NCBI GenBank assembly: GCA_965202585.1
Contig: OZ241829.1
Coordinates: forward strand, 28,954,001 to 29,018,000
Length of the DNA stretch: 64,000 bases
Reading direction: 5' to 3'
From: Thalia democratica
Taxonomy: Eukaryota
Shown here: positions 1,566 to 25,146 of the stretch, in pieces
How the letters are laid out: every line of letters begins with the position of its first letter
How positions within the stretch are numbered: position 1 is the stretch's first letter
The notes under the pieces: generated by a model
Seen by the model: only the letters and a program-made list of their open reading frames with translations
What the model was told of the DNA's origin: nothing
Databases searched by the model: none
Program-made: the position numbers and the translations under genes

Positions 1566-4500
1566 CTTTTTAAAATGTTTAACCGGTTAAGCTTTTTATA
1601 GTTTAAAAATAAGACAGAAGCACTACTGTATGTTACGTGAATCTAACAGCGCGTCCAGTCGATAAAGCATGTTAAATATTATACAAAAAATAAAATACAA
1701 CAAAATATTTGTTTAATTAAAAACTACCTTTTTAAAGATATTTTACATAAGATATAAAAATCCACATTTATATGTAGTTAGACTATTTTTTGTAAAAAAT
1801 ATAAATGCTAAATTAAAAAATTCGCAAAACAATTACAGCAAAACAACAAAAACAAACAAAAATTAATTAAAGAAACGCTAATTTCTAAACTGACTGTTTT
1901 CTCTTGAAGAATCCGCATTTGAAGAGGCAGAATATGATGAGCACGTAAACGATGAGGGCGATCAGTATCGCTATCAGGATGTACCACCACGGGAAGACTT
2001 GCGCCTCCGAGTCTATTTCGATCGCCTGGTCTATCTCCGTTATCACCTGTATGAAGGATATTGTTTGATGCATTTTTTACAAAATTCGAGTCAATCTATT
2101 TTTACTTTAAAAGTTGTTGTGTATGTTGTGAGGCAGTTGTTTTGCTGGTTTCATAATCACTAAACATTTTTTATTTACTGTTGTCCTGCGGCTATTATAC
2201 TATCATTGTTACTCGTCAGTATGAAAGAAAAACTAATACATGCTTATCACATTGCTAATGTTTTTTTTTTCATGTCATATTCTACTAACATGTAAGTTGT
2301 AAAACTAACAGAAGCCTTGAAACCTCATTTAACTTTTTACTTTTTTTCAAACTGATTACCAGTTCAAAAGTTAGTGTGTTGCACTTTGCAAACTTAAAAG
2401 TCACAATAAATTAAACATTCAACTTACGGAAGCCTTGAAATCTCCGACGATCCTGACATTTTCCTTGACGCTCTTGACTTCCGCATCCGATCTCACCGAT
2501 ACGTCCTTGACGTCGATGAACTCCTCCAAGAACGTGTAGTTCCACACTCGGGACTGTTTTAATTACAACAAGTAAAAATGCAAGTGCACTGGTTTATTAA
2601 GTCCACACACTTGAGTTCCAACACTCGCGACAGTTGGAAGTGTAACAAGTAAAATGTGACATATACAAGTTTACTAGTTGTACACTTGAGACTTAAAAAT
2701 GCAAATGTATTTGTTAACGCCAATATAAAAAGACATATACTGGTTTACGTTACAACCCTAAGAAAATAAATAAAAATATGACATGTACTAGTTTATGATA
2801 AAATATGAGAGCATAATACTTTACATCAAATACAGCGGTTTACGCAACACTCATAAAAATAACTAGTTCAACACCTTAGACTGAAAAGTATGTAAAATAT
2901 AAAAGGTATACTTGCTTACGTCACACTGCTGAAAAAAAAAAACGTAACAAGTTATCCGCTGTACGTCGCTGACGAGTAGCGACCAAAACTATGTTTTACA
3001 GATTGCAGCCAGAACATTTAGATAAAGTATTTTAAAAATAGAATAGATTATATTTAGTATAATTTCATATACTCTTTGACTAAAACTATTAAAAAGGTTT
3101 GTATTAGTTTAAAAAAACAATTTTTAATACATTTTCAAATTAACACATCTTTCCTTTTTACCTTACTTTTAGATTTAGCTAGTCATTGCACTCAGATGAA
3201 ACATACCTCAAAATTAATATTTCAAGTAATCTAGGTAAGTGTACAAACAATGTGTAAACTACTCACCGTGAGCTCAACGGTGGCGGTCTTTTTAGAGAAG
3301 AGTTCTTCCAAGTAACACTTGACCTCTACGCACCTCGCGCCCAGTTCGCACGTGATCGCACTCTCGAATCCAGAACTCGACTGTTAATTGTGTTTAATGT
3401 ACTATTTATTTTTATTATTTTTTTATTGATTCTCAGTTTTAGGTTCTGTCGTGCAATTGTAGTTTTTTTGTTTTTAATTAATAGCTTTTTGTTTTATACT
3501 AACTTTAATATCGTCGAAAAAAAATTAGGATTATTAAATATTAAAAACGCATGATTTAAAGCTTCGCTTTGAAAAGATTAAAGCTAAAAATTTCAGTTAA
3601 ATAATAGTCATCTGTTTATGGATGCACTTTTTTACCATGCATTGCTTTAGACATAGCATTTGTTATAAAAAGTTTTCGTACAATTATTCGCTTAAATTTT
3701 ACAACACGTGCTAGTTTTGAATTTTTTCAATACCTTGGACTTGTACTTTATGGGCTCCTTGCCCAGCAGCTTGGCGTAGGATACTTTTATATCGTCCTCG
3801 GACAAGCTTCTCGGTCTTCTGGACTCAGCAACACCGATCGACTTGTTGAAGTTTCTATCCGCATTCTCTTTGTCCGCGCCTGTGTAAAAATACTTAAATA
3901 AAAAAAAAAGGTTTAAAAAGAAACTGAAATACAATCTACTAGTATACTGAAAAATTGTTTGCAATACTTTGTTTCGTTGTTAGTATAAAATGAATAAATC
4001 CATAATTAAAAGACAAACATCTAATACATGTAAAATTTGTAACGAAAAAATCTACTGGTTTGTTATTTGATTTAACTGTTTTTTAAAAATGAGTTCTTAA
4101 ACGACAAACAATCAATAAAAATTAAAAACTTGATAATTAATAATAAACAATGATGCATGTTATTTTTAAATTAGTTATTGAATTCATACTACGTATTTAC
4201 TTATACACTAATTATTTTATCTGCATAGTAAAACTTCTACAGACTTTTGTAGTTAAAATGAAAACTTGTATGCTTTGATAAAAATAAGTAAGTAACCATT
4301 TACTTAGTCAATACTTAACTAAAATTAAATAATGCAGGAAAATAACGACTTTAGTATGAGTGAAAACAATAAAATTTTAACGTTTGTTTAATTTTGCACA
4401 AGTAATCTTATAGAGATGACACAAAATACATTAAGGTTTCAAACTATAAACAAAAAATTATTTGTCCATTTTAATTTACCATAATTTGAATTTAATCAAC

Positions 4501-7500
4501 GATATAAAAGGTTTTTCAAAGACATTATGAAAGTAAAAAAAGTACTTAAAATTATTAAGACATCAAATAATTTATTGAGGCAGTATTAGTTTACAAATTA
4601 CAAATAGCTTCACATACACACGATTATCACAAAAAAATAACCTCCTTATATAGTCCAGCTCTCCATCAACTCGGCTGTAGCTTTTTATTGATATAATTTT
4701 GGTTTTTACAAAATATTATACTAACTCAGTGCTTGAAGGTTAGACATTTATGAAAAAAAATGATTACACCATATAACCCGTATGATAAATTTTTTTCTTT
4801 TAGTGTATATATATATATCAAACAAAACACTGACCCAGTCCGTACTGGTTCACGTTCACGTACGTCTCGTCGCACCTTCCCTTGATCGACTTGTCGAACC
4901 CCAGCACCCTCGTGTCGGAGAGGTACATCAAGTACTTGCCGTTGTACAGCTCGAGCGGGAACTGCACCGACAGCTCCAACCCGGTCGCCACTTCGGTGCC
5001 TGTAAAATATTTTTTTTAATTTAATATAGTTTTAACCAATTAAAAAAAAAAACAAATATTTCTACATCCACTCCAGTACTTGGTGTTTGTAGTTTTTGTT
5101 AACTACTAAAACAATATGATGGCGGTTGGCATGTTTATATAAATGAAGTTTAAACAAAATAAGTTAAATCGTTTTTCGTTTATAGTAAGAGAAAACATCA
5201 GTTTCAGGTGGTAAAAACATTTTTTAAAATTATTAAGAGTAAATATATTGTATCAAATCAATTTAAGTATATCTTTAATACGACCCGCAGTTTACCGACC
5301 TATTTATTAGCCAATGGGTGGCTTTACAAGCTGTTGTGTCTAAAACTCACTTGACAACTATTATTACAATTCACAAATTTTATGTGCAACAAAATTATAT
5401 TTTGTAGTTTTTAGAAAAATTAGTAACTTTTTAGCAAAAAAACTTAATGTTATTAAAAAAAGAGCTGTCATATATTTTTCTCAAAACGAAACATTAAATA
5501 TCAAAACTAAATTGCTGAAACCTATATGTGAATTTGTACTAACTTAAGAAGTTACATTTAAGTTAAAATTTTCTGATAATGCTTTAACGTAAAAATTATC
5601 GTATAGTTTTTAATCTATTTAAGCCAGTAGTAAAAGAGTTTAAAACAATAACAATATATCAAAATTTATACGCCCCTTAGCTTGTAAACCTACTTGAAAA
5701 GCTTCTATAACTGAAACAAAAAAAAAGTGATTCACAGATTTTTTTGAACAAAATGTAAACAAAAACAAACCGTTGTTTTGAACGAAGAAGGAATAGGAAA
5801 CTTGTGGTCCAATTCTTTCCAGGGTTCCCATTGCAGATTCACCAACGATAGGGTTGTTGTAGTAACGGACCTGCAAGAATTAAAAAAATATAATTCTTTG
5901 TTTAATTTACTTTATATTCAACAAACTTAAATATAGATTAAATACCGTTTATTCTTAGGTTCGATTTTTTGCTATTTAAATAATTATGGTCGAAGCTTAG
6001 TTTAACACATTATTAGCAGTTTAAATTAGTCATTTACACTTAGGTTGTTATAGTAACGGACCAGTGTACAAACATAAAGGTTAACAGCAAACCTTAAAAG
6101 TTATTGCTGTTCTAATAATGTTAATAGATATTTTGATAAGATTATAACTTAAAAAGATGTTCATAATGTTCAGTAATGTAAGGCAGTGCCATTTAGTTTT
6201 AAATAACTGTATATAATGATTTTTTTTCCGTATCTAATAAAAGATATTTAAAAACATTAAGTAAGTAAACTATTTGAATTGTTTATTAAAAATGCAAAAA
6301 AAAAGTTTTGTAAATTTTATACTTAAGTATATTTTCAAAACTTTTTGCATCTGGCATAACATACATTAGGCATACAACAAAAGCTAAAATAAAAACTATA
6401 AAGATAAACGTTTGCGACCGTACTTTGCGTTGGTAATTAAAACTAAAGCTTCAAAGTAAAAGATAAACCCTCATATAACTTTAAAGCAATTAAGTTGACT
6501 GTAATACATTGCACTGCGCTCTATGCAACTGAATGTTTTGTGTTACCCTTTAATAATGAACAATGGTTTTAAATAAGTACTGCACTGTACATGTTTTGAG
6601 AATTTTTTAAATATTACTAGAACTTTAACTAGGTTTATATATTTAAAGCTAAGCAGTAAAAATGCTTTTATACTTAAGACAAAATTAAACTATAAGCAAA
6701 TTGTACTATCCAGTTAAATAACTTGTACTTATCAAAAACTCATTGCAACCTTTTTTGGATTAGTGCTAAACTTATTTATTCTATTTTTTACAAATCGTTT
6801 TCAAATTTTCTGTGTACAAGTACTAGAAAAAAATATATATAGCTAAAATTTAAGCTGTAATTATACTTTTAGTAAATTAGTAAAAACTTTACAGAAAAAA
6901 TAAAAAATTAATTTAAAGTAAGGATTACAAATTAAACAAAAAACATCAATATACGATTTTTATAGTATTTATTTATTTCACTTCTTAATTTATCAGCTGT
7001 ATCACCTCTCAACTTGTTTGGGACTTTCACTACACTTAATTATCTTATTTTAAAATTATTTAAATACCAGTTGACTATATGTGACCAACTGATTAATATT
7101 TAGGACTTTTACTAGATTCATTTATTCTACACTTTATCTATTTAAACATCAACTGATTTTATTCAACTAATCGTTATTCTGGCTTTAGACTTATTTAATC
7201 AATATTCGATTATTCAGCCTGCCGAACCTGTTTAGGGCTGGCGCTGGACGTGACGATTATGTCGTGCTCCACGACGACCCTGGTGGTCATCTTCTTCACC
7301 ATCGTCCTGTTGTTCATGCTGGTGGTCGAGGTCCTGTACTCGAACACCAGCTCTTTCGTCTCAATCGAGAGCGATCTCTCCACGAACTCAATGTCTATGG
7401 ACGAGACTTGGTTGCGGTAGAAAGGGTTGCCCAGGTCGCATATTACCTCGAACGCTGCAAATTAGGTGATAAGTATATAAATATCTTATTATATAAAGTT

Positions 7501-10500
7501 CATTTAGTTTGCTTTTTTGGGAGTTTAATCTTAATTCTTGGTTATCTAGTTTACATCATACTTGCTCGTATTATCTCGGAAGTATGGTAAAATGTAAGCA
7601 CGATAGTTTTTTCTTCTTATGTAATTAAGTAAATCATAATAAATTCATTATTAAGTTATTTTCGATTATCTATTATTAAAACATACGAAAGGTTATAATA
7701 AAAAATATGTATAAAAAATATCTTTAACATCTCATACGCTGGAAGTGCAGTCAAGTTTTGATAAAGTTATTAATGTTTACAAATTTTAAAAGCAACAAAT
7801 GCTCCTGTATTATTTAAAAAAACCTAACAACCTAATAATTTGCAACAACTCTAATAAATAAGTATTTTCATAAATTAAGTTCAAATAGTTTGTCTTTCTT
7901 GCTGTTTAGCTTTATTTTATTCATTAAAAATCTACATGAAGTAGTTGAAAGTCAGTCGTATAAAGTAACATGGTTGTTAACACACAACTTGTTATTTTTC
8001 TATAGCTACACAAATTATTAAATCATGCAAAAGTTTATGAAAAACAATGAATTTACTGATTTTACTTTAAAAAACTTATTTGTTGACCATAGGTTATTCT
8101 AGTTTAAGTATATTATTCTGGATTTTTTGTCATAGTTTTGTAATAAAGAAGGGCTTAACTAAACAGTAGTATTATGTATTTATTCATTCATACAAAACAA
8201 TTATTGCTGAGTAGTGATAACTAAGCTTTTATTTAAACTTAGCTGATTTACAATATCAACCTGTTTAACTTAAGATGATATCTTATATGATTGATCCTTT
8301 TTGTCAATCTGTAATTAATTATTTGGATTAAAAATGCATGAAAAACTCAAAGAGATGGCAAGTTTGATCAAAACTCGGATTAACAAACTTACCATAACTT
8401 AAAACAACTTGATAAAAAAACTATATATACAAAACAAGCGCCGTTATTCAACAAAATATTTCTAAACACCAAAAAAGAAAATTTAAAAGGCAATGTTTAA
8501 ACCTTTTTTGAATTTAAATCAACCTAACTTACTTGTAATCGACCATTAAAATTACCACAAACCTAAAACGACTTAATAAAAATTCTACATCCAAACAAAT
8601 AAAAAAAAGCTTGATAAAAACTATCTGAACGCCAACGCACCTGTAGAGGGCCTGCACGACACGGTTGAGTTCACACCGGCATCGAAGTTCTTGTACAGCA
8701 GGTGTTCAGAGTGGTCGATGTACAGTTTGGCCTGGTGTGCCTCTTCGCCCGGGTTCGTAACTTTTATGTTGATCGGCAAAGAGGGAGCATCTAAAACACA
8801 ATATTTTGTTTGTATATTTTTAAATTATTGAGATTGTAATTTTTCTCTTCAACTTTTGAAGGTCGATTTAAACTGATAGCTTTTGTGACCAGTTAGAATC
8901 ATTAATTTTTGTTTCACGTGAAATACAATTGTATTGTTTGATTTTTTATAGGTTTTATAGTTTCTAACAGTTTAAATAAAAAGTACTATCTATTTAAAAG
9001 ATAATGTGAAGTAAACACTGAAATGTGTTAGCATATTTGTATTACAATCAACACAGTCAACTCACGGTAGATGTATATATATTGATAGAACTAGCAGTAT
9101 ATTTATACCATACATCAACTCACGGTACAAATGTTCCTCGGGCGCCGTTCCTTCCGCGCTCAGCCTGCTCTGGCACACGTCGTCGTCCCCGCAGTCGTGC
9201 AAGATCCTCACCTCCTTCTCGTGCCTCGACTGGTAGTCCTCGTCCAGTATGGGGTACCTGACCATGTCCACCATCTCGGCGCCGATTGGTTCCGGCTCGG
9301 GGACTTGGTCGTCCGACGCCAGGCTGTACTCTGTGTGACGTCATAGCGAGTAAAAGTGACGTCACATTGTGTAAAAGTGACTTGGTAATTGAGTTTAGAT
9401 AATTGGTAATCACCAAGTTAGTTTGGTTGAATGTTCATTTGTTCGTCAAAAATACACAAGGAGTGCTATGTATTGTGATTATTAAGTCAGTTTGTTGAGT
9501 TTTAATAAAGCAACTTTAAAAGTTAAAACATACTGAACAGGTAAAAATAAAGTTTCAAAATGTTGATCTTAACTGCTATCCTCTTTTTAACACAAACTGT
9601 ACTCTGTGTTTAAATTTTTTGAGTTGTTTGTTTTGTATCAGTTTTAGCGAAGCAGATTTTGGAAAAGAAATAAAAATAAAAGGATAATGATAGAGTATTG
9701 AAGTTTATATTTAATTTATAAAAAATGCTATGAATCATCATAAATCGTTGATTTTTGTCAGGGATAGACGTTTTGTGATATTACTAAAACTAAATTCATT
9801 ATGACGTCACATGTAAAAACTATTACTCTTATTTTTACAACTTGAAACTACCGTTTCACGTTAGTTATAAACTTTGTATGTGACGTCATAATGTGCCGTC
9901 TTGCTGACATATGAATTAAATTCTCTTAAAGTTCAACAATTTTTTAATTTTTAATTTTATAGTCACTAGATTGAGGTTTTGTAGTTTTAAGTTCAAAATT
10001 TCGAATGAAGTTAGATTTTTGCACTAATACGCTTTAAACAGAATTTGAAATTACGTTAAAATACTTTTCTTTTTTCCTCTAACTTGTTTACTCCTATACA
10101 GTAATATTTGAGCTTTTATTTTTGTCCAAATAGCTGAAGATTGTAGCAATAAGCTACATGAAATAATTATACTTTTTTTTTGAAGTATTTTGTTATATAT
10201 AAAGTATATATATATAAATATATATAATTAAGAAAGAGAAAGCACTTTCAAAGATTAGAACTTTAGTACTAGAACTTTACCAAGCTAGTTATTTGATTAT
10301 AGTGTTTTGTTTTTTTTAAAACATTTGTTGCAATTGTTTTAACTTGTAGCCAGAAAATTAAAATTCATTTTAATTAAAAAAATTAAGAGTGTAATAAGCT
10401 CTTACTTTATTAAAGTTCAAAGACTTTATTACTTTTGACTTGATAATTTAACTTTCTCTTTTTAGTGTCTAGAAAAATTAAGATTTTACTGTAAGTCCTT

Positions 10501-13500
10501 CGTAAAAGTAATCGTAGACTAACATTAACTTCTAACGATATAAATAAAAAACCTTAAAAAATATAAACTTGTTGTACCTCTGTTGGTTTAATATGGTTTA
10601 AATTCAAAAACAAAGACATAATTTTTTTTTTTGCCAATATAAAAAACAAAATTTTATCAAAACCTTATATACTTGGAAAAAAAAAACTAAATAAATGACA
10701 AAAAATAGAATATAGTGAATATTTGAAACATACCTAGAACTATTGCAATTGGATCAAGTCTGTTTTTTGTTTTCTTCAAAAACTCGATTCTGATTCTGTC
10801 TTCGCATTTAAATTCACCTGAAATAAAAACAATAGGTTTAGTTTGGGGTTAGAAACGTAAAGCATTGAAAAAACTTTAGTTTCATATGTTGTTTACATAA
10901 ATTTTCTAAAATATGAAACTCTACAAACTTTTTGATCATGTGATAGCTATTTAGTTTTTTAGGACATTTGATAAAAAATTAAACCATAAAATATTTAAAG
11001 TTTTTAAAGTTATTTCATTTGTTATGATGGAAATTTTAAGAAATAATGAGTAGTAGTTGTAAAAGTTATAGAGTTAATAAAAGTTTGAAAATAATAGTTT
11101 AAATTTTTAATATTATTTGAAAAAGCTGGAAATCATTAAAGATAAGTATACTTTACTTAAGTAGCCAGGCTAAAACATATGCCAGTTTATTTCAGTTTTA
11201 GTTTGAGTGAATAAATATCAAGTCTTTATATTAAAATTTTTTTTATGTTTGATAAAATTTTGTTTTTTTACCACAAAGTTCTAATAAATAAAATTTAACA
11301 ACTTTAGTACTGATTTATGAGCTTTTTTACTGAAGTTACTTTCCAATAAACCGCAGAAAAGTTTTACAAAGCAGTTCAAGCATTCAAACGATAAATGTTA
11401 ATAATTTTCTATACTTAATTTATAAAAAACTTTTAATAAGTTTACATTTTACCAGGTCTTGGTAATTTGATAATTAAAAAAAAAATTAAAATACTTTACA
11501 AAAACAAACATTACTAGTTCTTTGTGATTAAAAAACGTAACAAATAAGCAACATTAAAAAATCTAACCAGATCTTGGCAGCTTGGTGCTGCTCTGGAGTA
11601 CGTTGCGATCACCCAGTCCATCGATGAGTATTCTCTTCTGGTCCGCTTCAGTGAACTGCTCGTCAAACACCACGCTGTAGTTGATGTCCAGCTCCTCCGT
11701 GAACTCGTCGTGCCTCGATTCGTATCTGCAATGTTTTGTTTTTCAAATTTCAAAATATTTACGTGCTATTGTAGTGAGTAAGTTTAAAGTAAAAATAAAC
11801 TGTGCTCAAAATTGTTGACTCTGTACAAATAGATAAAAAAACTTATATCAAATATGTTAAACACTTTATTCGTTTCTGTAAAAGTTTTTGTTATTATAAT
11901 TTTTTGATTACTTTATTAATAATGAACGTACTGTTTTTTATTATTATGACTTGTTTCAGTTTGACAGTCAGGTTGTTTCAGTTATTTATTATTTGATAAG
12001 ATGTAGTTTGACTTCCCCGAAACCGGTCATAAATAAAATAGTTGATAAGCACATTTATTATAATTTAGATAAACTATTTACTCAGTAAGTTGAGCAATTT
12101 TTACAGTTAGCACAAGTAATTTCATTGTATTTTTATGCAAAATATTTTGTGTTGTAACATTTATTAGTAGCAAGGGCGTAATTTGACCGAACACGCAGCG
12201 CTTTAGTTTTCTTGAGACAGCACTTTTGATTTATACTTTTAAAAATAAAGTTAGTTTCAGCAATTTAAAACTACTAGCAATGTGTTTAAACCTAAAAATA
12301 AAAACCATTAGTGTTTTTTTTATTGAAAATTTTAAGTTGTGTAGATAGGTAGTAGTAAAACATAAATGTGCTTAAGCTTGCTGTTTCGGTAAAAACACAT
12401 TAAGATTCAGAATTTATTTTGCAATTTTTTAAAATATATTGTCTAAAAGTTTTTACTGGTACAATAAATTTAAATCACTTTATAAGTAACTTTTGTTCAA
12501 GGTGTTTACAGTTTCAACAAATAACTTTTGATTATTTTATGTATTCTATCATTGTATAAATGTATAGCGAAAATTTACTGATTATATTAATGCTAAAAAT
12601 AAATTCAAAAAGTTAATTTTTCTTTAGCGTGTCAGAAAACTGTTCTATTTTTTAATTACTTACAGCCCATTTTAAATGAGCCTTTTAAACATACAACATA
12701 AAAAAGTATGGTTACAAACAAATAATTATTCTTAGATATTTGATTACACTACATTATTAACAACATAAACAAACATGTAAAATTTTATGACTGACTACAA
12801 TTTATGGCCTTTATAGTTAAAAAAAAAGTTTTTCACCAATGCGATAAGCCACTCTCACGCAAAACTGAATTAACTTTTATTACTAAAAATTTTACAATTT
12901 AGACATGTTCAATGTTTTGTTCATAGGTATAAAAAAGTTTTGTTTTTACTACATAATCTATAATTTTTACAGTATGTTACTTTTAATAACTTTAAAAACT
13001 GTGCAATTCATTTGTTATTTATAACTTTTAACTTTAAAACAAACGTATGTAGCAATTTCATTTACGTAGTTGAAACAATCTAATTAGTTACATACTTAAC
13101 AGTCTAATATACAAAAATACCCCGTACACTTTTTTTTATACATATTTTATTTCGCTTAAAACAATTTCTTTCACCGGTGATATGAATGATGCGTTAAAGG
13201 TTAAACAACCATAACTAATTGAAAAGAGTTGGTCAAAAACATAAAGATCCCCCTTACTTTTGACTATTGTAATCTAAATTCTTTTATTTGCACTCAAGGA
13301 TCAATACATTTAAAGTAATTTTTTAAATTTTTTTACGACAACAATGTTTTGCCTAAAAAGATCTTAAACTAAAGTTCTTATTGAAACAGTATAGAAGTAC
13401 TTTTGTTCCTCTTGTAAAAGTATCTCTTGTTGTTTGTTCAACACAACTCACTTGAGGCACAGTTGGAAGTAGAAGCAGATGGATCCGTCTACGGTGTCGT

Positions 13501-16500
13501 TGCTCTCGCAGGGAACGGGATCCTTCAGATCCAGCAGTTCCGTCGTCAGGTTGAAGTAGGACTCCACCGCTATGATCGGTCTGGACCTGAAATGAAATCG
13601 AACAGTAAAGATAACTGAAAGCTGCTAAAGAAGTCATGTGTCAGAACGTCAATAAAAATTAGAATCAAAATTAAATTTCAATTGCAACTGACTGTTCAAT
13701 ATGAGTGTTGTAAATTTATTAGCATTTGTTGAGTTGATGCATTGAAAACATACAAAAAAAATTACTTGTTAAAATGTATTTATTTAAAGTTTTTTTTAGT
13801 ACAACATTAATTAATCAAAACTTTATTTGTAAAACTTAGTTTCACCCTTTAAGGGATTTTTAGTTACAGCCTTTTTTGTTTATTTTAAAAGTACTTCTTA
13901 CATGAAAGTTAGTTATAACAAACTTTGTTTCAAGCTTTGCAATATTTTCGTCGCTTTAAGCAAATTTTTTTTAGTATGCAATTAATTGAGTCTAGTGATT
14001 GGTTTTTATTAAACTGATAATTAAGCTGTTTTTCTCATAATAATTTTCTCTAAATAAAACTTTAATTAAGGTTTTAATTGATAATTTTTCAAAAAAGCTT
14101 ATATAAAAGTATGCTTATTTAAAAAAAAGAAACAATTTGCATACTTTAGAAAACACTTGAGTAGCTTATTTTACATACAAAGCTTTACAATAGACAATTT
14201 TAAATAAATACTTTTATAATTACGATAAACCTTAAGTTCAAAACTAAAATTAAAATTTTTCGAAAAAAAACTTAATACATAGAAAAAATTGTTATAGTAG
14301 CAATTACAGCTTTGTTATGTTTTTCAAAAGATGACAGTTTAGTAGATTAAAACATTTAAATTTGACTTGGTACGTTATTTGCAAAGTAGCAAACTAAAAC
14401 GAAAACATTTTGTACACAGGAGAAAATTGTCAACAAATATTTACTTAAAGCTTAAAAATAGAAAAATTATTGCTTTGCATATAGTTTTTACAAAACGTTA
14501 CTAAAAAAAAGTACCTTTCAAATAAGATTAAATTAACTGACAACATTAGTTCAATTTGATTTCCAGAAATCTCATTGTAAAACACAAGACTTAACTAGAA
14601 CAGGTTCAGCAGTAATATTCAATTTTAAAAATAAAAATCCCCCAACCTGAGATGAAGGGCGAAGTTGGACCTGGAGCCGATGAGGACATCCGGGTACTTG
14701 TTGTCGTCCATGTCCATGTTCCCCGAAATCGAAACTCCGAAACCCCTGACTTCCCGGTCCGCCGCTCCCCCGAACTTGCCTCCGTCCAAAACCTGAGACA
14801 ACTTCAACGTTCCCTCACTCGTTCCTGCGATGATTCATTCATTTTATATTTTAAACAAGTTTTTATGCAAGTACTTTAAGTTTAGCTTTTCTTTTTACGG
14901 CCTACACCTTATTTTTATATATTCATGTTGCGCAGAACAAAAACAAAAAGGTCAAGGCAAAATTTTAGCTGAAAAAAAAACGGCTTAAATGTAGCGACCT
15001 TAAGTCTGAATTAAAACTTTGTTAATTTTTATTTAAATAAACTGATAAAACATTTCTCAAGCAACCAATTAACACAGCTAAAGTAATAAAAAACTTATTT
15101 AGTGACTTTTGAGTAGCTTAACTTTGTAGTAGATGTAAAATAATCAGTTTGTTAGTTAAGTAATTTAAAAACACAAATTCCATACTATCTTCAACTTTCT
15201 AATTTTTATAAGCAGATAAAACTAAACATAAAAAAATATAACCGTTTGTATCTGTGAGTCTACTTGTGTTGTGCAATAAATCAATTTTCACCAAAATATA
15301 TAATGAACTTTTTTAAACTCAAAAACTTCCGTTTTTATTCATTCAAATTTTTGTTTAGTATTTTATCATTTTAAAACTTAATCAATACTCTACCAACCTA
15401 CATCTCTATCACTTAAAATTTTTCAACAAACCTCTATAAATGTAAACTTTTCCGGTCTTGTTGTCCTTGGGCGCTCCAATTGCCACGTCATTGTACCCGT
15501 CCTGGTCGAAATCCCCCAATGTGGCCAATGTCTGACCAAAGAACGAGTCCACCGGACCATACAAAACTTGCGGATCCACTTCACTGAGTTTCAAAAAGTC
15601 TCGTTTTATTTTATACTTCGAAAAGTTTACACACTAAAACCTTAACGAAACAACCGACGACTCACGCTATGGAAACCCCAGGCTGAGTAAGGTGGGTTAG
15701 GGGTATAGTTTCAAAAAAAAGAAAAAAAATTTGGTATATGAAGTTAGTTGCAGGTTTTTAAATGCACCGTATGCATCACGACCAAACAATTAATTTATGA
15801 CGTAACCAACGACTCACGCTATGGACATGCCAGGCTGACTGACATACACGTACGCGGCCCCTCCGTACTTGTTGTACTCGTAATACTGGGGCGCGCCAAC
15901 TATGAGGTCATCAACTCCGTCGTTGTTGATGTCGACGACCAGCAAGGAGTAGCCGAAGGAGGACCCGACCTGGTACCCGTCCATGAGCAAGAAGTCCTCC
16001 AGCTTGGGCTCGATTTTCTCCACGCCTGTTTTTGTTGCGTGATTTTTGTTATTTTACGTCATTGACGTGTTTTTTTTGTTAATTAAATTACGTGTTTAAG
16101 TTCGTGTTTGGGTTGAAAAATAAAAACTAAATATGTATCAACTTAAACTGTGAGGTACAAAGTAAACTGTAATTGTTTGTTGTAATTAAACTGTATTTTG
16201 TTTTTTAAAAAGTCTTATGAGCTTTTATTTGAGAGCCTGTGTTTGTTGTATTTACATTTAATATTATAACCTTTAGCTTTTAAGTAAACTTTTAATTGAT
16301 ATTTCTAAGTTTTAAAAGTTTTCTTAAACCTAGTTATAATTAAAACTTTTAAGACAAAAAAATATATGTAATGTTGTTAAACCAACCTTTAGCGCAAATG
16401 ATAAGTTTAAATCTCTTTAATATGTTTTGTAAATATCTACAAATTTTTTGTCTAAGTTTGTATTGAATTTAATAAAGTACCTAAAATATTAATAAAGTAC

Positions 16501-19500
16501 TTTGAAACTTGTTTATAAACACTCTGTTCAAATTATTAAAAAGAAATCAGTTTAACTATAAAAAAATAGGTTTTAACAACAAATATTTTTTTGTACTACA
16601 TAAGTTTAAGTAATAATAGATAAAAAATAAAGCTTTAAGTAGGTCAATTATTTTTCAAAAGTAATTTTTTTTGTCGTATTACTTTATTAATACTTCTTGT
16701 AGCTACAAGCAAGCTATTCAGTTAAAATCAAATATAACATGCAAAAATATATAAATGTTGATTTGCTTTTATCAGAATCGTCATTAAAATGTTAGTAAGA
16801 AATAAACTAAATTTTAGGCATTGATTGTAATTACCGAAAGTAATTGTCTTTACTGTTACACTAATCAATAATATAAGCAACTTTTACTTAAATTTAAGGC
16901 TTTTTAATTATCATTAAGATAAAAGTATAATTTCGTTTTAAAAATTGTATAAAAGTTTAGTAATTAAACTAGTTTAAACGTTCTCCGTGCAATTTTACTT
17001 TTATTTTTCATTTAACTTAATACTAAGCATGATTCAAAAGCATTTTGTTTAAAAATAAATTAACAAAACTAAAGTCCGATTGCTGTTTAACCTTTTTAGT
17101 TACTTAACTAAAAAATAGTTGAAAACAACATCGCATAATTAAAACTATCTTTTCGTTTCTCAAGTTGTTCACAGCCGAAAACTAGACTATACTTAAACAA
17201 AATTGCAACTCGTAAAAATACAACCCATTAGATTTAACAGACAACTCAAAAACTTAAAGGGGTAATACTTTTACGTTGAAAGGCGCACTTGTAATAATTT
17301 TTACAGTAAGCAAAACAAAGTCCAGTCTTTTTCACATAAAAACCAAATTTCCAATTAATTAGTTCAAGTAACATATTTACATGAGATTTTTAGCTTAAAA
17401 TAGAAATTAGTAACAGTTTAACCAATTTAAGTCGCAATGCTCTGCCCAACGCGTCACTACTACTTAACATACTCTATATTTTTAATCGCTCAATTGAACT
17501 AGCTGTTGTTTTCTTATTAGCAATACTCATTTAAACTTTTCATTTAGTCATTAACTCATTTAGTTCTCCAGACATACATCGTGTTTCTGCAAATTACAAA
17601 CAAATTCGAGCGTCTACAATTTATTGATAGGAACATTTCAAATTGCATATTTTCAGTCACAAATTAACACAACAGCCACAAGTTATTCACAAGCGCAGAG
17701 TAAATCAAAACACTTTTGATTTTTTAAATTTACCTTCATCTGTAGTCAGTCCACCTTAAATACACAACTTTAAATCAGTCCTCTTTCAAATATTTTTATA
17801 CTTTAAGGTCAGATGTAATTTTTTTTTCAGTTTTAAGGCCGCTTCGTGTTCATATTTAAACTTTTTGGCGTGTATTTTTTTTAGTGGTTGTAATGTAACC
17901 ATATTTCGAGCAACAGTTATTTATAAAAAACATAATTGAAAACATTCTTACTTTATTAAACTTAATACACCATGTAAGTTTTCATCGCCAATCAAATTCG
18001 TCAGAGTTCATATTTATCACTAACTACTTTGCATTTAATCTACCACCAGTTTTTTAATTGAAAAGTATAGAAAAAGTACTTTTGTCATGCTTAAGAAGAA
18101 AAAAGATCAACTGTGATAAATTAAAATGTCTTTTTAAGTAACACCCCGTATAATATTAAAATTATGATAGTAAGGAAAAAGTTTTGTATAGTCTATTTCA
18201 TCATTTTATTGTGAAAAGGTTAGTATATTTTAAACAAAGTTAGAAATGTTTATTAAAGAAGAAGCTTTTAGTTTGAAATCTTAAAAACATATCCATCTTG
18301 AAAAAAAAAAAAATAGATCATGTACTTGTCTTTTTTAAAGTTGATCATTCTACTCTAATATTTTTTATTTATATACCTAATATTTAATTAAATCAATTGT
18401 CAGCTACCATGCAAATTATTGTTTTCTTACCTCCTCGTGTCTTATAGTAGAGTTCTGTTGAATTAATTATTACGTCACATATACTACACTGCATAACAAT
18501 ACAAAACAGTGAAATTACAAAAATTATTATTTTTTAGATAAAAATAATTTTGAATTATTTACTCTTAGCTAAGATGATAAATTATAAATAAGTAAACAAA
18601 ATGAATTATGAGATAAAAAACAACATTTAATTGCTTATACTACTTATTAAGTTTGTTTAATATACTTTTTATTAATATATGTTTTTAAGCAACTTACTTT
18701 CTGAATATTATCTCTTATAGTCAAATAATAAAAACTTTGAGTTTGTACGAAATTAAAACTGTTTATAGCAAAATCTAAACTTTAATTTTGTTCTATTTTA
18801 TTAAACATTTATACATAAACTTATAAACACAAAAACAACTTGGTGTTGAACTTTTTTTATAAATAAATAGATATTACAAAAAATACAGTAATCAAGGTAT
18901 ATACTTAAGCCTGAACAAAAACAAAACTTGTGTGTACAAACGACAAAAAAAAAGTGACACAAAAACGTTTCGACAAAACAATTAGCACACGTCAAACCAA
19001 CTTTTAACGAAGAACACCACCCCGCCCGTGAAGTTGTACCTGGGAGCGCCACTTATCACCACTTCGCCCAATTCGGCGTCGAACATGTTGCGGGTGATCG
19101 CCACCGAGAAACCGTTGTACGAGTCCTTCTTCATGGGAAACCTGTTTGTTTTAATGATAATAAGTTGTAAAAATATAAATAGCTGCATATATCAAGCTAA
19201 AGGTTTGTTAATAGGGATCGTAGCGAGGCAAGTTCGTTTGTATATATAATGAAAAGAATTTGATTAGCCATTTTAAATAATGTTAAACAAACATTAAAAT
19301 ATTTGTCAGTTTAATAAAAAAGTACTGTGCAAATTGTTTTTGCTATTAAGAAAAAAAAATTAACAAAAACCAATTTGAATTTTCCAAGCTTTGGTTCTTT
19401 TTGTTGTGATGTAATTTTTTTTGAAATTGTTAGTGCAGCATAGCTCTAAGGTACGAAAGAAAGAGAGACAAGATTAACATGCACAAGTTATTTAAAAAAA

Positions 19501-22500
19501 ATACACAAAATTGATGATGGTGATTTAAAACAAATTAACGTACTTTGCATTGACGATGGACTGCCACAGTTTCTGTTCCTCACCGAAGAACTGCTTCTTC
19601 AGCTCCTGGTAGAACACGCTTCCACGCCACTCGAGCGCACCAGGTCCCCCTGTGACGTAACAAAAACATTTAACATGTTCAAACCGACACTCAATTCTGA
19701 TATATAGTACAAGAAAGAAATTTTTATATTTATATGCATAGTATGTTGAGGTTTTTTGATCTTATTGTTAGTTTTTGCAAACAAATCATAGAGCTTAACC
19801 GTTATCATCATAATCAAATCAAAAAGAAAGGGCGAGAAAAAAATTTAAAAAGGAAAGCAACTAAATTCTACTTCATTGACTGTATAAACACAGCAAAGTT
19901 GCCATAAGGGCACCCGCATGGAGCCAAGTAGTACTTGTAGTGGTTATTATAAAATTGATTATTAAAAATTAAGTCAACTCTAGTTTATAGTACAAGTAAA
20001 AAGTAATTGATTTATATTTAAAATATGTTGAGAAACTGCAACCTAAGTTTTGTAGAAAACAAAACCTACAAGTTGGTAATGGAAATTAAAAAGTACATAA
20101 ATAGTAAATTATTTTTAAAGTAATACTTCTTGGTTGAGAGGATCTTCTTCATTCTTAATCTTTTTTATGTAATAAACAGTCAACACTCTTGAAATAAATA
20201 TATTGGCAGCAAAAAAAGTATAACTAAATGCTAAAAATTCAATTACATAACAAAATGTATAAACAGAATGCCTTAGACCACTTTATTAATGAAACTTGAG
20301 TTTAAATGTTATTTTCTATTAGTTTGCAACCAATTTGCATAAATAAAAACCAACCGACTATGTAGGAACCTCTATAAACAGCTGAATTTATTATATATAT
20401 TTTAATTTTAAAAGACGAGCAAAAACCTTCACTGAAAAAATAAAATGACTCAATTTCTTTCTTTTCAAATATATTTCACCAACTTATTCATTCAGTAAAG
20501 TTAGTGATGAGTCTGATGTTTAATCTGTTAAAACAAAAAATCAACTGTTTACGTAGGAACCTCTACGAACAGCAATGTTCATTCCTGTTTGTGTTAATTT
20601 AAAATTTCAAACTACCGACCGACTGCGTAGGATCCGTTCCCATTAACCGCCAGGCTGACCCCAGGTTGCCCGTACGCGTACCCGTACTTCTTCCACGTGG
20701 CGCCCACTAGCGTCTCGCCCAGTTCGCAGAAGTTCTCTGTAAAATAAATAACAATTAGCATTTTTACAACGACAGCTCATCAGACAAAAATGCTGAAAAA
20801 AAAACAGAGCGAATAAATAAAAATTAAACATTGAATGTTTTGTTAAAACAGTTGTAAGATAAGAAGAAGTTTTCTGTAAAGATAAATGAAACCAATCAAT
20901 TAATAGCACTTTCACGCATGAATGGTTTTGTGTAATATACATAAAGTAAGCAATAAGTTGCTAATATCTATATTTTATTGAAATTTTTATATCTGTAAAA
21001 TAAGATAAGTAAGACCATTCTTTTAAAAATAGTTTCTTTCATGTACGGATAGTTTTTTTCTTTATGTATAGTATTCCATAAGGTGCTAACTTTACTGTTT
21101 TAGTGAAACTTGAGGAAATTGACATTTTTGTCTGTCGAAACAAGTTTTTTAAATAGAACAAATATTTTAAATTTCGTGTATTTTATGATGAATAAGATAA
21201 AAAAGAATTGCGATTAGATTTATTTTCTAAAGAGTTAAAGCAAGCTGCATAGTAAAATATTTCTCAGTGTTTCAACTCACATAAGTCCTCTATATAACAT
21301 TAGCAACAACTTTTCTGTGTATAAGTTGTGATACCATTATGCTGCTTTTACTCAAACTTAGCGCGTTTGAAAGTTATATTCAAAATACTAATCATGTGTT
21401 AAGTATTAATATTTAACTTACGAAATTAAGCTAGTTTTTATGAAATGTGTTTACTATCTATGAATAGTTTACGATAACATAAATTTATGTTATCATATAT
21501 AAGAGCAGTAAATCAGTTCTTATTCAAATCCAGTAAATTTAAATCTGTATGTATAAATTTATTAACTTTTTTGAATTTGTAATATGGTATTGACATTAAG
21601 TTCTTTCTTGTTATAATGGTTTGTAAAAAAGTGCAGTTTTTAACAAACTTGTTAAAAAAAAAGGATTAATTACTTTTATAACACCATCAGAAAAAAAAAC
21701 AGTTACAGTTTTATTCAACATATTTATTTTTATCACACTTTTACAAAATTTACAATAATTAAGTTTGAGATTAAGTTAATTTATACACGAGATTTCATTT
21801 TTGGACATGATAAAATTATACAAAAAAGTATTTCTAGTTACTGGTAAACGACAAGCAGCAAAAACACTACAGTTTTTCTATAAACAATTGTTAATAGTTA
21901 CACAAGTTCAAACGAGCTTACAAAATATTAAACGTTTCAAAATACAATCTACTGACATTCATAACAACAAAACTCATCTTTTTAAGTGCTTTGAGCTTAT
22001 GTCTGTTGATTATGATTTTGTTTTATTTATAAGATAAAGGAGGAGATACTTTGAAAACAGAATAAATTGAAGCTTGACTATTTTAAAAGCATTTGTAAAA
22101 GTAGTTATTATACAAAATACATTTTTAATGCTGCACTTCATTTATTTAGTTACAATAACATCGTGTTTATTTATGATAAACATATAATTGAAGCGAAAAC
22201 TTGCAAACTATTTAAGTATGTGCACTATAGAGAAATAAAAGTTTGTGTTTATATACTTTTAATTTATAAATTAAATAATAATAAAATAAATACAATAAAA
22301 CAAACAATAAAAATAAATGTTTCTACTAACTTGTAGCAAGGTTTTCCTCATCTTCTTTTAAACTATAATCAGTTCCTGTGAAAAAAGTATACTTATTAAA
22401 AAAATTAGAAAGTTCTGGGAAATAGTATACTTGATAAAAAAAATGCAAGGGAATAATTTTTAATCAAATAATTGCTTGCTTAAGATTTTATATTTAGTTT

Positions 22501-25146
22501 TATATTTCAGTTTAGTTGAACTTAAAAAAACATTTATTAAAAGAATTTTGTTGTGAACAATTATTAAGTTGTTTTTAACAAAGAATAAAATATAGAAAAC
22601 TTTAAGTGTTTGTTATTAGTACTTCTTGTTATCTACTAGATACATAGTAATTAAAAAACAACTTAGTTTGTTTTTAGTATAAAAAAGTGCTTTTTGCACC
22701 GTGTCAGTTAGAAAACAATTTCAAACTTTTTATAATATTTTGCATTATAAATAGCTATACAATGCAACTATAACAAAGAGGTAGCTCATTATCTAGTGTT
22801 ACGGTTTAAAAAAGTAGATAGAGTGTAAACAAAAAGTTTTGAATGGAATCAATTTATTGTCAAGTTTCAAAACAGTTATTTTTTTTGCAAAGACTCTTTA
22901 GTAAAATAATATTTACAAAACGTTATTTTTACCCCAATTCACTAACCATCAAGGGCAAAACACTTTCCACAAATTCTCATAGTTTCTTTTTCTTCCTTAT
23001 CTTTAACCCCGTGGATTCTGTGAGCGCAAACCATCACACGCTTACCAATACCTAACAATTAATATTCTTATTAGAACTAATTCTATTTGTTTAAGAATAA
23101 AACTTAATTGTTTTTGTAAGTCAGCGTGATTTAAAAGGCTTGTAAGGTATTTATTTTTTATATACCTACAAAATATTTCCCATATAATAGTTCATAAAAT
23201 AAAATTCTAGTAATTTTTCAATAACCAAATTTTATAAAACATCTTAAATAAATAATTTAATAAACTTAAATACCTTAAAACCGATTCCCATATATTTTTT
23301 TATGAAAATATTTCCTAGTGGTTTTTCAATAACTTAAAATTTTTGATTGTTTTGTTTTTGTATAAAAACACGACTGGTATACTATTTTTAAGTTTTAAAA
23401 TAAAAATTGAAGTACTAATAGGTGTTTTATGTAATGTAGGGACACACTTTCTTTTAAAGAACTTGTAATACTACTTATTGTTTGAATTAACAATTACTGT
23501 TTATAAACTGAAGTTTTTGACAGATAGTGTTATCGATGACTACAGATAGTTTTTAATTGTTATCTTGGACATGAAAAACCTTATTTATGAAACATAGTTT
23601 TAGTTAGCTTCATCATAGTACAACAAAAAAATTTTAAATTTCAAAATTATAGTTAGCTAACTAATATGTTATATTAGATTAATTGAGATTAAAACGTCAA
23701 AAATATCTCTTTGTTATAAAGTTCTTTCTCCTTTGGGAGTTATACTCTCAAAAAGGTAATAACGTTGTATCGACGAAATAAGCATTGTAACACAATATAA
23801 ACTATAAGTAAGTTGTATAAATAATATAAAAACTACAATTCTTTGATGAAACATGTTTAATACAAAGCTCAAAGACTTTAAAAGCCGTTAGTTTTCAATA
23901 GCTGAAAAAAATTATTTATAGTTCAGAAGTACATACAATAAAATAGATAAATTTATCAAAAAAAGCCGAGTGAAACTAAAACCAACCCTGGCTCTTCATT
24001 GAAACTCCCAGCCACTCGTCCGTTTTGTTCCACGTCACGGTGCTTCCCCCTTGGTCCACCTGAACCCTCGCGCAGTCCTGCCGCTGGGTGGTGTAGGGGC
24101 AAGAGTACACGCCACCAGGGGCGGTCGAGAGCGGTTGGCTTGGCAACGCGGTGGCGGTGGGCGCCCCAATCGCGAACATGCTCGAACCCGGTTCTGTATT
24201 GATGGGGTTATTATATTTATTATATTATTTTATTTATTTATATTTTATTTATTACCAGCTATTATAATTGCAAATATCTATTATATTTAAGTTTATAGGT
24301 TCTTAAAAAATCAACAAGGTTATAATAAAGTAAATTTGTATAAAAACACCTGTTTCTTTTATGAAAGATTTAAAAGTATCAAAAACTGCCTGTGTTCTGA
24401 AAATATTTAAAAAATAGTTTAGAAATAAAATGCTTCTTCTTTTGTAACTTAAGAATGAAGGAGGAAAACTGAGAGCACAAGTGTGAATTTAAATTTGACT
24501 AGTTGTTGAATGAACTAAGGGTTTAATTTATAGTTATGGAAAGTTAGATAAATTTTTGTAATTTTTAAAAGTAAAATGTTTGATATTTTCTCAAAAAAAA
24601 GTTTTAAGAAACCAAAAGTGTATTGAATTATGTTTATAAAAAAAGTTATAAAAATTGTAGTGCTAGTTGTAGGTAACGATTTAGAAAATTTCTGCTCATT
24701 TTAAAAAAACTTCTGAAGAAAGCCAAAAGTTTAATAGAAAAACTTAAAAATACTTTTTAGGGTATAAAAATTATTTACACTTTGCAGTTACTCAGTAGCA
24801 ACACGCAGAATATTTAAGTAGATAGTCAGCTAAGTAGTCAGCTTTATTAAACAAACATAAAAAAAATTAGAACTAGCTTGAAAACTGTGTTGTAGACAGC
24901 TTTTAAAGTTTAATCAAAATTTTAAAATCAAACAACTTTGTATTTCTAAAGGCAAAAAAAAAACGCTTTCTTTCAAGAACAGATACTTAACAAACCATTT
25001 GATATTTTGTGCATGACCGTCGAATAACCGAACAGCGATCCGTCGACTCCCTTCTTGTAGTAGGGTAGCCTCTCCTCGAAGCTGTACCCGTGTGTCGTCA
25101 TGACGACGCATGACGTAATCACCAGCACCAGGCACAGTGACGTCAT
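1478..25146 (-). CDS. ITGA: Integrin alpha subunit (no I-domain; laminin-receptor PS1/alpha3-6-7-like), 24 coding exons, 1094 aa
   Basis: All 23 introns are GT-AG with compatible phases; exon lengths sum to 3285 nt with no internal stop. Motifs: signal peptide [20 protein letters not shown] repeats (SLFGYS..AIGAP, SYNGFSV..SGAPR, SSFGYS..VGAPQ, SFFGQT..IGAPK), Ca loops [27 protein letters not shown], genu CGDDDVC, RRPR furin site, [32 protein letters not shown] and VGESAM resemble vertebrate alpha6/7 (from memory, not searched). Confidence 0.95.
1895..2046 (-). CDS. Integrin exon 23 (transmembrane + GFFKR)
   Basis: catacag|GTG..AAA CA|gtcagt; [50 protein letters not shown]. Confidence 0.95.
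2428..2553 (-). CDS. Integrin exon 22
   Basis: aaacag|TCC CGA GTG TGG..GCT TCC|gtaagt; [18 protein letters not shown] (calf-2). Confidence 0.92.
2571..2930. repeat. Degenerate tandem repeat (about 6 units of 40-75 bp) in integrin intron 21
   Basis: Recurrent aaaat(g)tgacatatact(g/a)gtttac..acac(t/c)t(g/a)ag units. Confidence 0.55.
3267..3380 (-). CDS. Integrin exon 21
   Basis: taacag|TCG..CTC ACG|gtgagt; [38 protein letters not shown]. Confidence 0.92.
3734..3879 (-). CDS. Integrin exon 20 (contains RRPR heavy/light-chain cleavage site)
   Basis: acacag|GC GCG..TCC AAG|gtattg; [25 protein letters not shown]. Confidence 0.9.
4835..4999 (-). CDS. Integrin exon 19
   Basis: ttacag|GC ACC..CTG G|gtcagt; [41 protein letters not shown]. 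Confidence 0.92.
5771..5870 (-). CDS. Integrin exon 18
   Basis: ttgcag|GTC CGT..AAC G|gtttgt; [33 protein letters not shown]. Confidence 0.92.
7228..7454 (-). CDS. Integrin exon 17
   Basis: ttgcag|CG TTC GAG..AAA CAG|gttcgg; [22 protein letters not shown] (calf-1 CDLGNP motif). Confidence 0.92.
8641..8790 (-). CDS. Integrin exon 16
   Basis: ttttag|AT GCT..ACA G|gtgcgt; [30 protein letters not shown]. Confidence 0.92.
9124..9330 (-). CDS. Integrin exon 15 (genu)
   Basis: acacag|AG TAC..TAC C|gtgagt; [32 protein letters not shown]. Confidence 0.95.
10734..10817 (-). CDS. Integrin exon 14 (AT-rich)
   Basis: tttcag|GT GAA..CTA G|gtatgt; [27 protein letters not shown] supplies the thigh C..(D)KL(D)PI motif; 27/84 GC. 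Confidence 0.85.
11568..11725 (-). CDS. Integrin exon 13
   Basis: ttgcag|A TAC..TCT G|gttaga; [28 protein letters not shown]. Confidence 0.9.
13452..13586 (-). CDS. Integrin exon 12
   Basis: tttcag|G TCC AGA CCG..CTC AA|gtgagt; (R)[20 protein letters not shown](K). Confidence 0.92.
14647..14824 (-). CDS. Integrin exon 11 (FG-GAP 7)
   Basis: tcgcag|GA ACG..CTC AG|gttggg; ..[25 protein letters not shown].. Confidence 0.95.
15432..15583 (-). CDS. Integrin exon 10 (FG-GAP 6)
   Basis: actcag|T GAA GTG..AGA G|gtttgt; [50 protein letters not shown]; this is the only in-frame phase-2 acceptor. Confidence 0.9.
15818..16025 (-). CDS. Integrin exon 9 (FG-GAP 5)
   Basis: aaacag|GC GTG..ATA GC|gtgagt; ..[38 protein letters not shown]. 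Confidence 0.95.
18431..18454 (-). CDS. Integrin exon 8, candidate 24-nt symmetric microexon
   Basis: caacag|AA CTC TAC TAT AAG ACA CGA GGA G|gtaaga; phase 1-1, (K)LYYKTRG(G); the frame is also kept if it is skipped. Confidence 0.6.
19002..19141 (-). CDS. Integrin exon 7 (FG-GAP 4)
   Basis: aaacag|G TTT CCC..AAA A|gttggt; [32 protein letters not shown]. Confidence 0.95.
19544..19649 (-). CDS. Integrin exon 6
   Basis: tcacag|GG GGA CCT..GCA AA|gtacgt; [34 protein letters not shown]. Confidence 0.92.
20620..20736 (-). CDS. Integrin exon 5
   Basis: ttacag|AG AAC TTC TGC..GTC G|gtcggt; [38 protein letters not shown]. Confidence 0.9.
22331..22375 (-). CDS. Integrin exon 4 (45 nt, AT-rich)
   Basis: tcacag|GA ACT..ACA A|gttagt; [14 protein letters not shown]; phase 1-1, fills the acidic linker expected before the FC motif; 14/45 GC. 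Confidence 0.72.
22947..23051 (-). CDS. Integrin exon 3 (AT-rich)
   Basis: tgttag|GT ATT..GAT G|gttagt; [23 protein letters not shown] supplies the conserved V.CAHR..G.C motif. Confidence 0.92.
23987..24193 (-). CDS. Integrin exon 2 (FG-GAP 1/2)
   Basis: atacag|AA CCG..CAG G|gttggt; [33 protein letters not shown]. Confidence 0.95.
24996..25146 (-). CDS. Integrin first coding exon (signal peptide + start of blade 1)
   Basis: ATG at 25146; [51 protein letters not shown]|gtttgt. Confidence 0.92.

Follow-up and report, generated by a model that had tools for sequence, protein, structure and literature searches.

About a quarter of the exon-intron junctions in an integrin alpha gene of Thalia democratica bear short, decaying copies of themselves. 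The gene lies on the minus strand of a 64,000-nucleotide (nt) stretch of contig OZ241829.1 (assembly GCA_965202585.1, positions 28,954,001 to 29,018,000). We call this whole stretch the window, and all coordinates below are positions within it. The copies, here termed ghosts, are real and junction-specific. At a probability of roughly 70%, we read them as pseudo-junctions that arose by local direct duplication of boundary-straddling segments and that are left unused by the spliceosome and are decaying.

The host gene forms GC-rich islands within a very AT-rich window. For its coding region (1888-25146, minus strand), a GT-AG model consistent in phase gives 21 coding exons, together with one exon of 45 nt and two microexons that are used alternatively. 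The introns have a GC content of 21-29%, apart from a single short intron at 36%. The full coding sequence (CDS) comprises 1060 codons with zero stops, and its GC at codon positions 1, 2, and 3 is 0.51, 0.37, and 0.72. The predicted protein has Pfam matches to FG-GAP (E=4e-13 and 4e-11) and Integrin_A_Ig_2 and ends in KCGFFKRK, that is, in a GFFKR tail. By these domains and this tail, the predicted product is an integrin alpha chain. Five junction pairs are backed by RNA contigs from run X4, in which the joints 15583|15818, 16025|19002, 19141|19544, and 19649|20620 agree exactly with the model. A preliminary description of the window, made before this model, numbered the exons differently; its exons 5, 9, 13, 15, 17, 18, 19, and 22 are E4, E7, E11, E13, E15, E16, E17, and E20 here.

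Ghosts were detected with junction queries of 35 nt (20 nt of exon and 15 nt of intron), each compared with up to 400 nt of intron flanking the same junction. An ungapped, composition-aware score was used, and the null for each query was its best scores across the 64-kb window on both strands. In the first test, 10 of 40 edges reached p<0.01, and for nine of them p was at the 0.0002 floor. No query matched significantly (0/40) when run against the wrong flank of its exon or against an inverted flank. These empty wrong-side controls bear out the constant polarity reported in the preliminary description, with 5′ ghosts upstream and 3′ ghosts downstream. Applied to all 24 exons of the model, the test yielded 14 peaks scoring 16 bits or more where 1.8 were expected, spread over 11 of 46 junctions. 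In this gene, junctions are enriched at least 17-fold over intron-only events, as derived below.

A scan that made no use of the annotation led to the same junctions. At offsets of 20-400 nt, the window holds 16 direct-repeat pairs scoring 24 bits or more, and five far-offset nulls hold none. Within the gene, nine pairs of at least 20 bits include a junction, and the remaining intronic pairs all fall in stacks of copies at junctions, except one. The local direct-repeat scan of the gene found no intronic copy of any exon-interior segment. Run at a low threshold, Tandem Repeats Finder yielded a single repeat, of 21 nt, next to the E13 acceptor, and the degenerate stacks score too low for it.

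All 10 clear ghosts span their junction, five of them donors and five acceptors. Each holds 2-21 nt of exon and 1-24 nt of intron, in direct orientation, on the intron side, and 58-273 nt off the true junction, offsets that agree with those first reported. Similarity extends past the splice consensus, as in gtgagtcgtYggtt, which matches at 13/14. Divergence is equal in the exonic and intronic parts (15/121 versus 11/90). Because the matches exceed the consensus and both parts are equally diverged, the ghosts are copies by descent of the true junctions.

Chance resemblance, or convergence on the splice consensus in low-complexity AT-rich sequence, can hardly account for this set. It would fit the exon E15 (both edges) and E17 cases, which are at or near chance level, and two accepted ghosts that are just 13-14 nt long. 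Of those claimed cases, the E15 3′ ghost (p=0.17) and the E17 5′ ghost (p=0.19) are not distinguishable from chance, and the E15 5′ ghost is marginal (p=0.045). Against this, nine edges stand at p<=0.0002 under query-specific nulls, the wrong-side and inverted controls are empty, and the matches run beyond the consensus into exon and intron. For the strong cases, these tests exclude chance.

The best ghost derives from the 3′ junction of E7, and this feature and all those that follow in the catalogue are on the minus strand. The true junction, taken as the last 21 nt of the exon and the first 14 nt of the intron (15804-15838; RNA joint 15583|15818), is matched at 31/35 by a ghost at 15652-15686. 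This ghost lies 152 nt downstream, has an intact gtgagt, and scores 50.9 bits with p at the floor. It is contained in an X3 contig covering 15300-16361 and is without use in RNA contigs. In the same 234-nt intron, at 15652-15725, a T-rich tract and an acceptor-like site ending in actcag lead into 17 nt of exon-derived ghost sequence and then a perfect gtgagt. The sole joint in the RNA contigs here is the one that removes this intron entirely. The 5′ ghost of E7 (16235-16248) is mainly intronic and matches at 13/14, 211 nt upstream, with weak extra copies at 16065-16078 and 16174-16265.

E4 also carries ghosts on both sides. Downstream, a distal ghost (20345-20382), covered by X3 and X5 contigs, matches the true junction at 20614-20635 in 18/22 positions. 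A proximal ghost (20536-20573) matches the distal one at 31/38 and the true junction weakly (16.9 bits), which corresponds to the second copy noted previously. Upstream, the 5′ ghost (20865-20887) matches at 15/16 ungapped or 21/23 gapped, at a distance of 137 nt, with a weak second copy at 20992-21008. Its sole exonic mismatch, at 20872, is polymorphic, with the exon-like base in other runs.

The remaining ghosts belong to four exons. The E11 3′ ghost (11449-11468) matches at 15/20, 115 nt downstream, with donor gtaaaa (p=0.0035, 19.3 bits). E13 has a 3′ ghost (9057-9069) of 13/13 (TACC|gtgagttga), 58 nt downstream, and a 5′ ghost (9597-9609) of 13/13, 273 nt upstream, which is absent from the earlier list. 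Adjoining the E13 acceptor is the 21-nt tandem repeat (9335-9381, 2.2 copies), which includes TGACGTCA. The E16 5′ ghost (6043-6062) matches at 19/20, 191 nt upstream, and lacks the acceptor AG. The E20 3′ ghost (2303-2326) matches at 21/24, 118 nt downstream, with donor gttagt. Upstream of E20 is a degenerate stack of 3′-splice-region units (2598-2883), with edge copies at 2614-2654, 2675-2694, and 2864-2883 and repeated spacer motifs; the 5′ ghost of E20 matches at 27/34. The 3′ ghosts of E4, E7, E11, E13, and E20 and the 5′ ghosts of E4, E7, E16, and E20 are among the twelve listed before, and all nine were recovered here.

Several junctions hold 2-4 ghosts on one side. Degenerate tandem stacks occur at the acceptors of E20 (four edge copies with repeated spacer motifs), E13 (the 21-nt repeat), and E7 (several acceptor-region copies), and the E4 donor is likewise stacked. 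Ghosts diverge from each other by 0-35%.

In the duplication reading, a short segment across an exon-intron boundary would be duplicated locally, in the same orientation, 58-273 nt deeper into the adjoining intron. Such a copy would survive only where the reading frame stays intact, and boundary-straddling segments alone would qualify. Survival of boundary-straddling copies only would lead to the fixed polarity and to the lack of exon-interior copies. The original outer splice sites would still yield correct mRNA, permitting the copies to persist. The spliceosome makes no detectable use of the ghosts, probably because splice signals in this gene are weak and exons are recognized via a GC-rich body, which ghosts lack. 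Ghosts would afterwards erode without constraint as mutations biased toward AT accumulate, a course that the mismatches show in part. Repeated rounds at some junctions would build the degenerate tandem stacks, and intron lengthening would be a by-product of the copies. The splice signals of this gene are unusually weak for an animal. Its donor sites (n=23) follow GTNNGT and not GTRAGT, with T or C at +3 in 12/23, polypyrimidine tracts are poor, and many acceptors have A-rich tracts.

A survival filter of this kind was already part of one model in the preliminary description; in the pure form of that model, short duplications fall uniformly along the gene and selection merely clears those inside exons. 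Polarity and the lack of exon-interior copies agree with it, as do two tandem duplications elsewhere in the window (50.2-50.5 kb and 55.3-55.9 kb). Simulated events, matched to the real ones in length and divergence and scattered at random over the introns, were passed through the same detector. Scaled from the nine clear junction pairs, uniform placement predicts 85 detectable intron-only pairs if both copies decay and 131 if divergence is equal. The gene has one such pair that is unrelated to junction stacks, which is about chance level, and three within stacks. Uniform duplication by itself is, in light of this shortfall, very unlikely. Local direct duplication and the survival filter are retained from that model; it does not provide for the junction bias or for similarity that is limited to short patches. 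Its further proposal that competing acceptors were knocked out applies to just two of about seven upstream ghosts, and the donor ghosts aligned across their junction keep GT. Three upstream ghosts had been said to lack the acceptor AG, which we find for two significant ones (E16 and E20).

That GC-rich sequence is easier to detect is not enough to produce the junction bias. The concentration at junctions leads us to conjecture that breaks or repair errors start in or at exon edges. Candidate sources of the bias are breaks that start in exons or at their edges, whether at the limits of nucleosomes or R-loops or where inter-allelic homology stops, and insertions that make long target duplications. 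A broader proposal, which we regard as tentative and on the whole doubtful, is that exon edges are hot spots of a specific break-and-repair process that copies a junction-centered window of about 13-35 nt into the nearby intron. Acting genome-wide, at about a quarter of junctions, this process would rank among the main drivers of intron growth and would continually supply ready-made splice sites to new microexons and introns. Its candidate triggers would be the edges of nucleosomes positioned on exons, the edges of R-loops at GC-rich exons, and ends of homology between diverged alleles.

The extent of the similarity bears on how the copies were made. At the E7, E13, and E20 donors and the E13 and E16 acceptors, a 13-35 nt patch alone is common to both copies. 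The interiors of putative tandem units in intron 7 have no similarity (z=-1.5). Extended gapped alignments around each pair gain nothing, save a weak 44/68 extension at the E4 donor. When all spacers were compared with the 64-kb window by blastn, low-complexity matches alone were returned, and no other spacer copy. The interval that separates the two E4 donor ghosts contains a segment of roughly 50 nt (20431-20482) whose word depth in the DNA runs is 3-7-fold higher; many contigs diverge at both its ends, as for a short dispersed repeat. The read word depth of the E7 donor spacer is ordinary or low.

Such a layout could also result from insertion with a long target-site duplication, where a mobile element or filler DNA enters at a staggered break across the junction and fill-in duplicates 13-38 nt. 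The ghost and the true junction would then be the two copies flanking the insert. The sequence of patch, unrelated spacer, and patch, with sharp edges in most pairs, is what this predicts, and the high-depth core of the E4 donor spacer would be a dispersed insert. We nevertheless consider insertion unlikely. The remaining spacers are single-copy in the 64-kb window, the E7 donor spacer is not elevated in depth, neither terminal repeats nor terminal poly(A) are visible, and 35-38 nt is a long duplication by the standards of known element classes. Insertion also leaves the junction preference and the tandem stacks unaccounted for.

Reads from independent runs were then compared at the E4 and E7 loci: X3, labeled as another organism and about 3% diverged; X5, a marine metagenome; and X4, RNA. 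Contigs from X3 and X5 span the ghosts colinearly. Because these runs are independent, the ghosts are not assembly artifacts, a concern that the preliminary description had raised. In the X4 RNA contigs, only true joints were found for E4-E8, the RNA-covered junctions, and no ghost joints. Two metagenome scans, one for a degenerate pattern of the E7 coding sequence and the other for the junction patch that the copies share, recovered no other haplotypes or species.

These data also address whether ghosts are kept for a function in splicing, be it to decoy or assist U1 or U2AF, to serve as back-up or alternative splice sites, or to seed microexons. GT is kept in every donor ghost aligned across its junction, AG is kept in about five of seven acceptor ghosts, and some donor ghosts equal the true site in strength. 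The junction enrichment might reflect retention, one site co-varies between true junction and ghost, and this gene does use two microexons. We judge a function improbable all the same, since RNA contigs contain no ghost joints and, as checked by eye, splicing at the donor ghosts of E7, E13, or E20 would introduce a stop or frameshift. AG has been lost in two acceptor ghosts, and the microexons are unrelated to adjacent exon edges. Nor do the ghosts diverge more slowly than the intron around them: compared with X3, the window differs at 3/35 sites of the E7 ghost and at 5/199 in the remainder of that intron, and the ghost shows no sign of constraint. The variation between runs at 15828 and 20613 is in the true junction. 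Ordinary divergence since an old duplication accounts for the read data, and copying of ghosts from other alleles need not be invoked. Recursive splice sites (ratchet points) were considered and rejected, as ghost donors follow exon-edge sequence, ghost acceptors have no GT after them, and no RNA joints use them.

The direction of decay separates local duplication from exon renewal, the second model of the preliminary description, in which an older AT-rich exon was interrupted by the insertion of a new, GC-rich copy and survives as eroding halves, the ghosts. Ghosts bracket four exons (E4, E7, E13, and E20; Fisher p=0.003, a value inflated by easier detection at GC-rich edges), and at mismatched sites the ghosts are more AT-rich than the exon, both in line with renewal. 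The bracketing is as claimed for E4, E7, and E20; it extends to E13, which had not been named, and does not hold for E15. Among 15 exonic mismatches, nine are at third positions, nine are synonymous, and nine are GC>AT from exon to ghost. The excess at third positions is p=0.025 against a uniform expectation and p=0.11 when G/C sites are weighted, so the reported bias toward synonymous, AT-ending changes is weak. Many mismatches look synonymous and AT-ending because G/C sites are mainly at third codon positions. At 20872 and 15674, other runs have an exon-like G/C, which makes the A/T state of the ghost derived, not ancestral, at both informative sites. Multiple ghosts per side, exonic pieces of 2-21 nt, and intron flanks of the supposed insert that lack homology further oppose renewal, which we regard as refuted. 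Contrary to the earlier suggestion, neither model explains the GC3 mosaic of the gene. Ghost presence has no significant link with exon GC (Mann-Whitney p=0.16).

Several observations weigh against local duplication as we favor it. Most pairs are non-tandem, their 13-35 nt patches end sharply, and the spacers between and after the copies are unrelated. The rarity of intron-only pairs, at least 17-fold below what uniform duplication predicts, calls for a bias that is unproven. Contigs from X1, X3, and X5 over the E4 and E7 ghosts are colinear and show no copy-number or length difference, although contigs hide rare variants. Contigs likewise drop rare isoforms, and low-level ghost use is possible. 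One aligned site, 15838 in the true junction and 15686 in the ghost, has changed in both between the window and X3, which has a chance probability of about p=0.09 and hints at gene conversion or constraint. The result comes from a single gene, 18 of whose junction pairs are predicted only. Lastly, the isolated patches with unrelated spacer that predominate here differ from the near-perfect head-to-tail units of the classical boundary duplications in amphioxus, known as mirages.

Mirages are minisatellite-like tandem duplications of exon-intron boundaries, described in amphioxus Adh3, troponin C, the globins BflGb6 and BflGb9, and PGBD5 (PMC3087553, PMC3902484, citing Canestro et al. 2002). They copy either boundary type, keep AG and GT, and leave splicing undisturbed, and the mechanism that generates them is unknown (PMC3087553, PMC3902484). 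The ghosts share with them copies that span 5′ and 3′ boundaries, often with AG or GT kept and normal splicing undisturbed, as well as the unit size range (10-160 bp in mirages) and the capacity of several copies to stack. By these junction-spanning and non-interfering features, mirages would appear to be the closest known counterpart of the ghosts, which are thus a known but barely studied kind of repeat. In contrast to mirages, the copies here are older (0-21% diverged), and no length polymorphism or homogenization was seen at the E4 and E7 loci. With roughly one junction in four affected in a single gene, their density is far above the anecdotal amphioxus cases. The amphioxus genome has a GC content of about 41%, and the host genome here is far more AT-rich.

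Three other systems offer comparisons. In the Rogers model, an intron is gained when an exon segment that contains AGGT is duplicated in tandem in the genome (see also Gao & Lynch 2009; both as cited in PMC3087553). As with ghosts, a local direct duplication gives a second splice site, and the material between becomes intronic; the difference is that here an existing intron is lengthened, none is created, and the outer original sites are used. Intron gain by this route was rejected for the same gene, since the introns pre-exist and the ghost lies inside the intron. Direct repeats also flank new introns and insertions made by double-strand-break repair (review PMC3488318). Those share with the ghosts a patch-insert-patch layout, sharp edges, and a unique insert, whereas the ghosts are at pre-existing junctions and not inside exons. 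The repeats that flank repair insertions are shorter than the 13-38 nt seen here. Ordinary intronic pseudo splice sites and decoys are, like ghosts, of consensus quality in GT and AG and ignored by the spliceosome, but ghosts descend from the neighboring true junction, exon sequence included, and are not chance matches.

Intron growth and the origin of new splice sites and microexons are poorly understood, and junction duplications have been proposed as one source, documented so far in a handful of amphioxus genes only. A genome in which about a quarter of junctions bore dated, decaying copies would let their birth rate, size spectrum, and fate be measured. It would permit testing of the junction bias against chromatin, R-loop, and heterozygosity maps and would allow one to ask how a weak-consensus spliceosome ignores perfect-looking decoys. 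The gain from this window is modest: a well-controlled example, the rejection of exon renewal, and a quantified junction bias.

Other features of the gene were seen alongside the ghosts. The 45-nt exon (22375-22331, minus strand) is AT-rich, forms no GC island, and sits between the exons at 22947-23051 and 20620-20736; an X4 RNA contig continues into it from the downstream exon. The two alternative in-frame microexons, m1 (18454-18431, 24 nt) and m2 (17754-17734, 21 nt), are on the minus strand in the intron that separates the FG-GAP exons E6 and E7. RNA contigs represent three isoforms, in which E6 joins E7 directly, through m1, or through m1 and m2. Sequence comparison found no relation of the microexons to adjacent exon edges or to one another. 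In E7, the codon at 15828 (minus strand) is ATG or GTG, a Met/Val difference between the window and run X3 in an FG-GAP exon, and the ghost has the Val state.

The part of the window from 25 to 64 kb is gene-poor and has no additional annotated junctions for testing. Rfam and tRNA searches of the window returned no matches. The two larger tandem duplications in this part (50166-50465 and 55347-55954) have units of about 189 and 320 nt that are 85-93% identical, and they are the only sizeable local duplications with no link to an annotated junction. Finally, four exact copies of the CRE-like palindrome TGACGTCA occur in one intron (9336-9888), compared with 0.29 expected window-wide. Two are within the 21-nt tandem repeat at the acceptor and two within an inverted 14-mer pair, and an additional copy overlaps the start codon (25138-25145).

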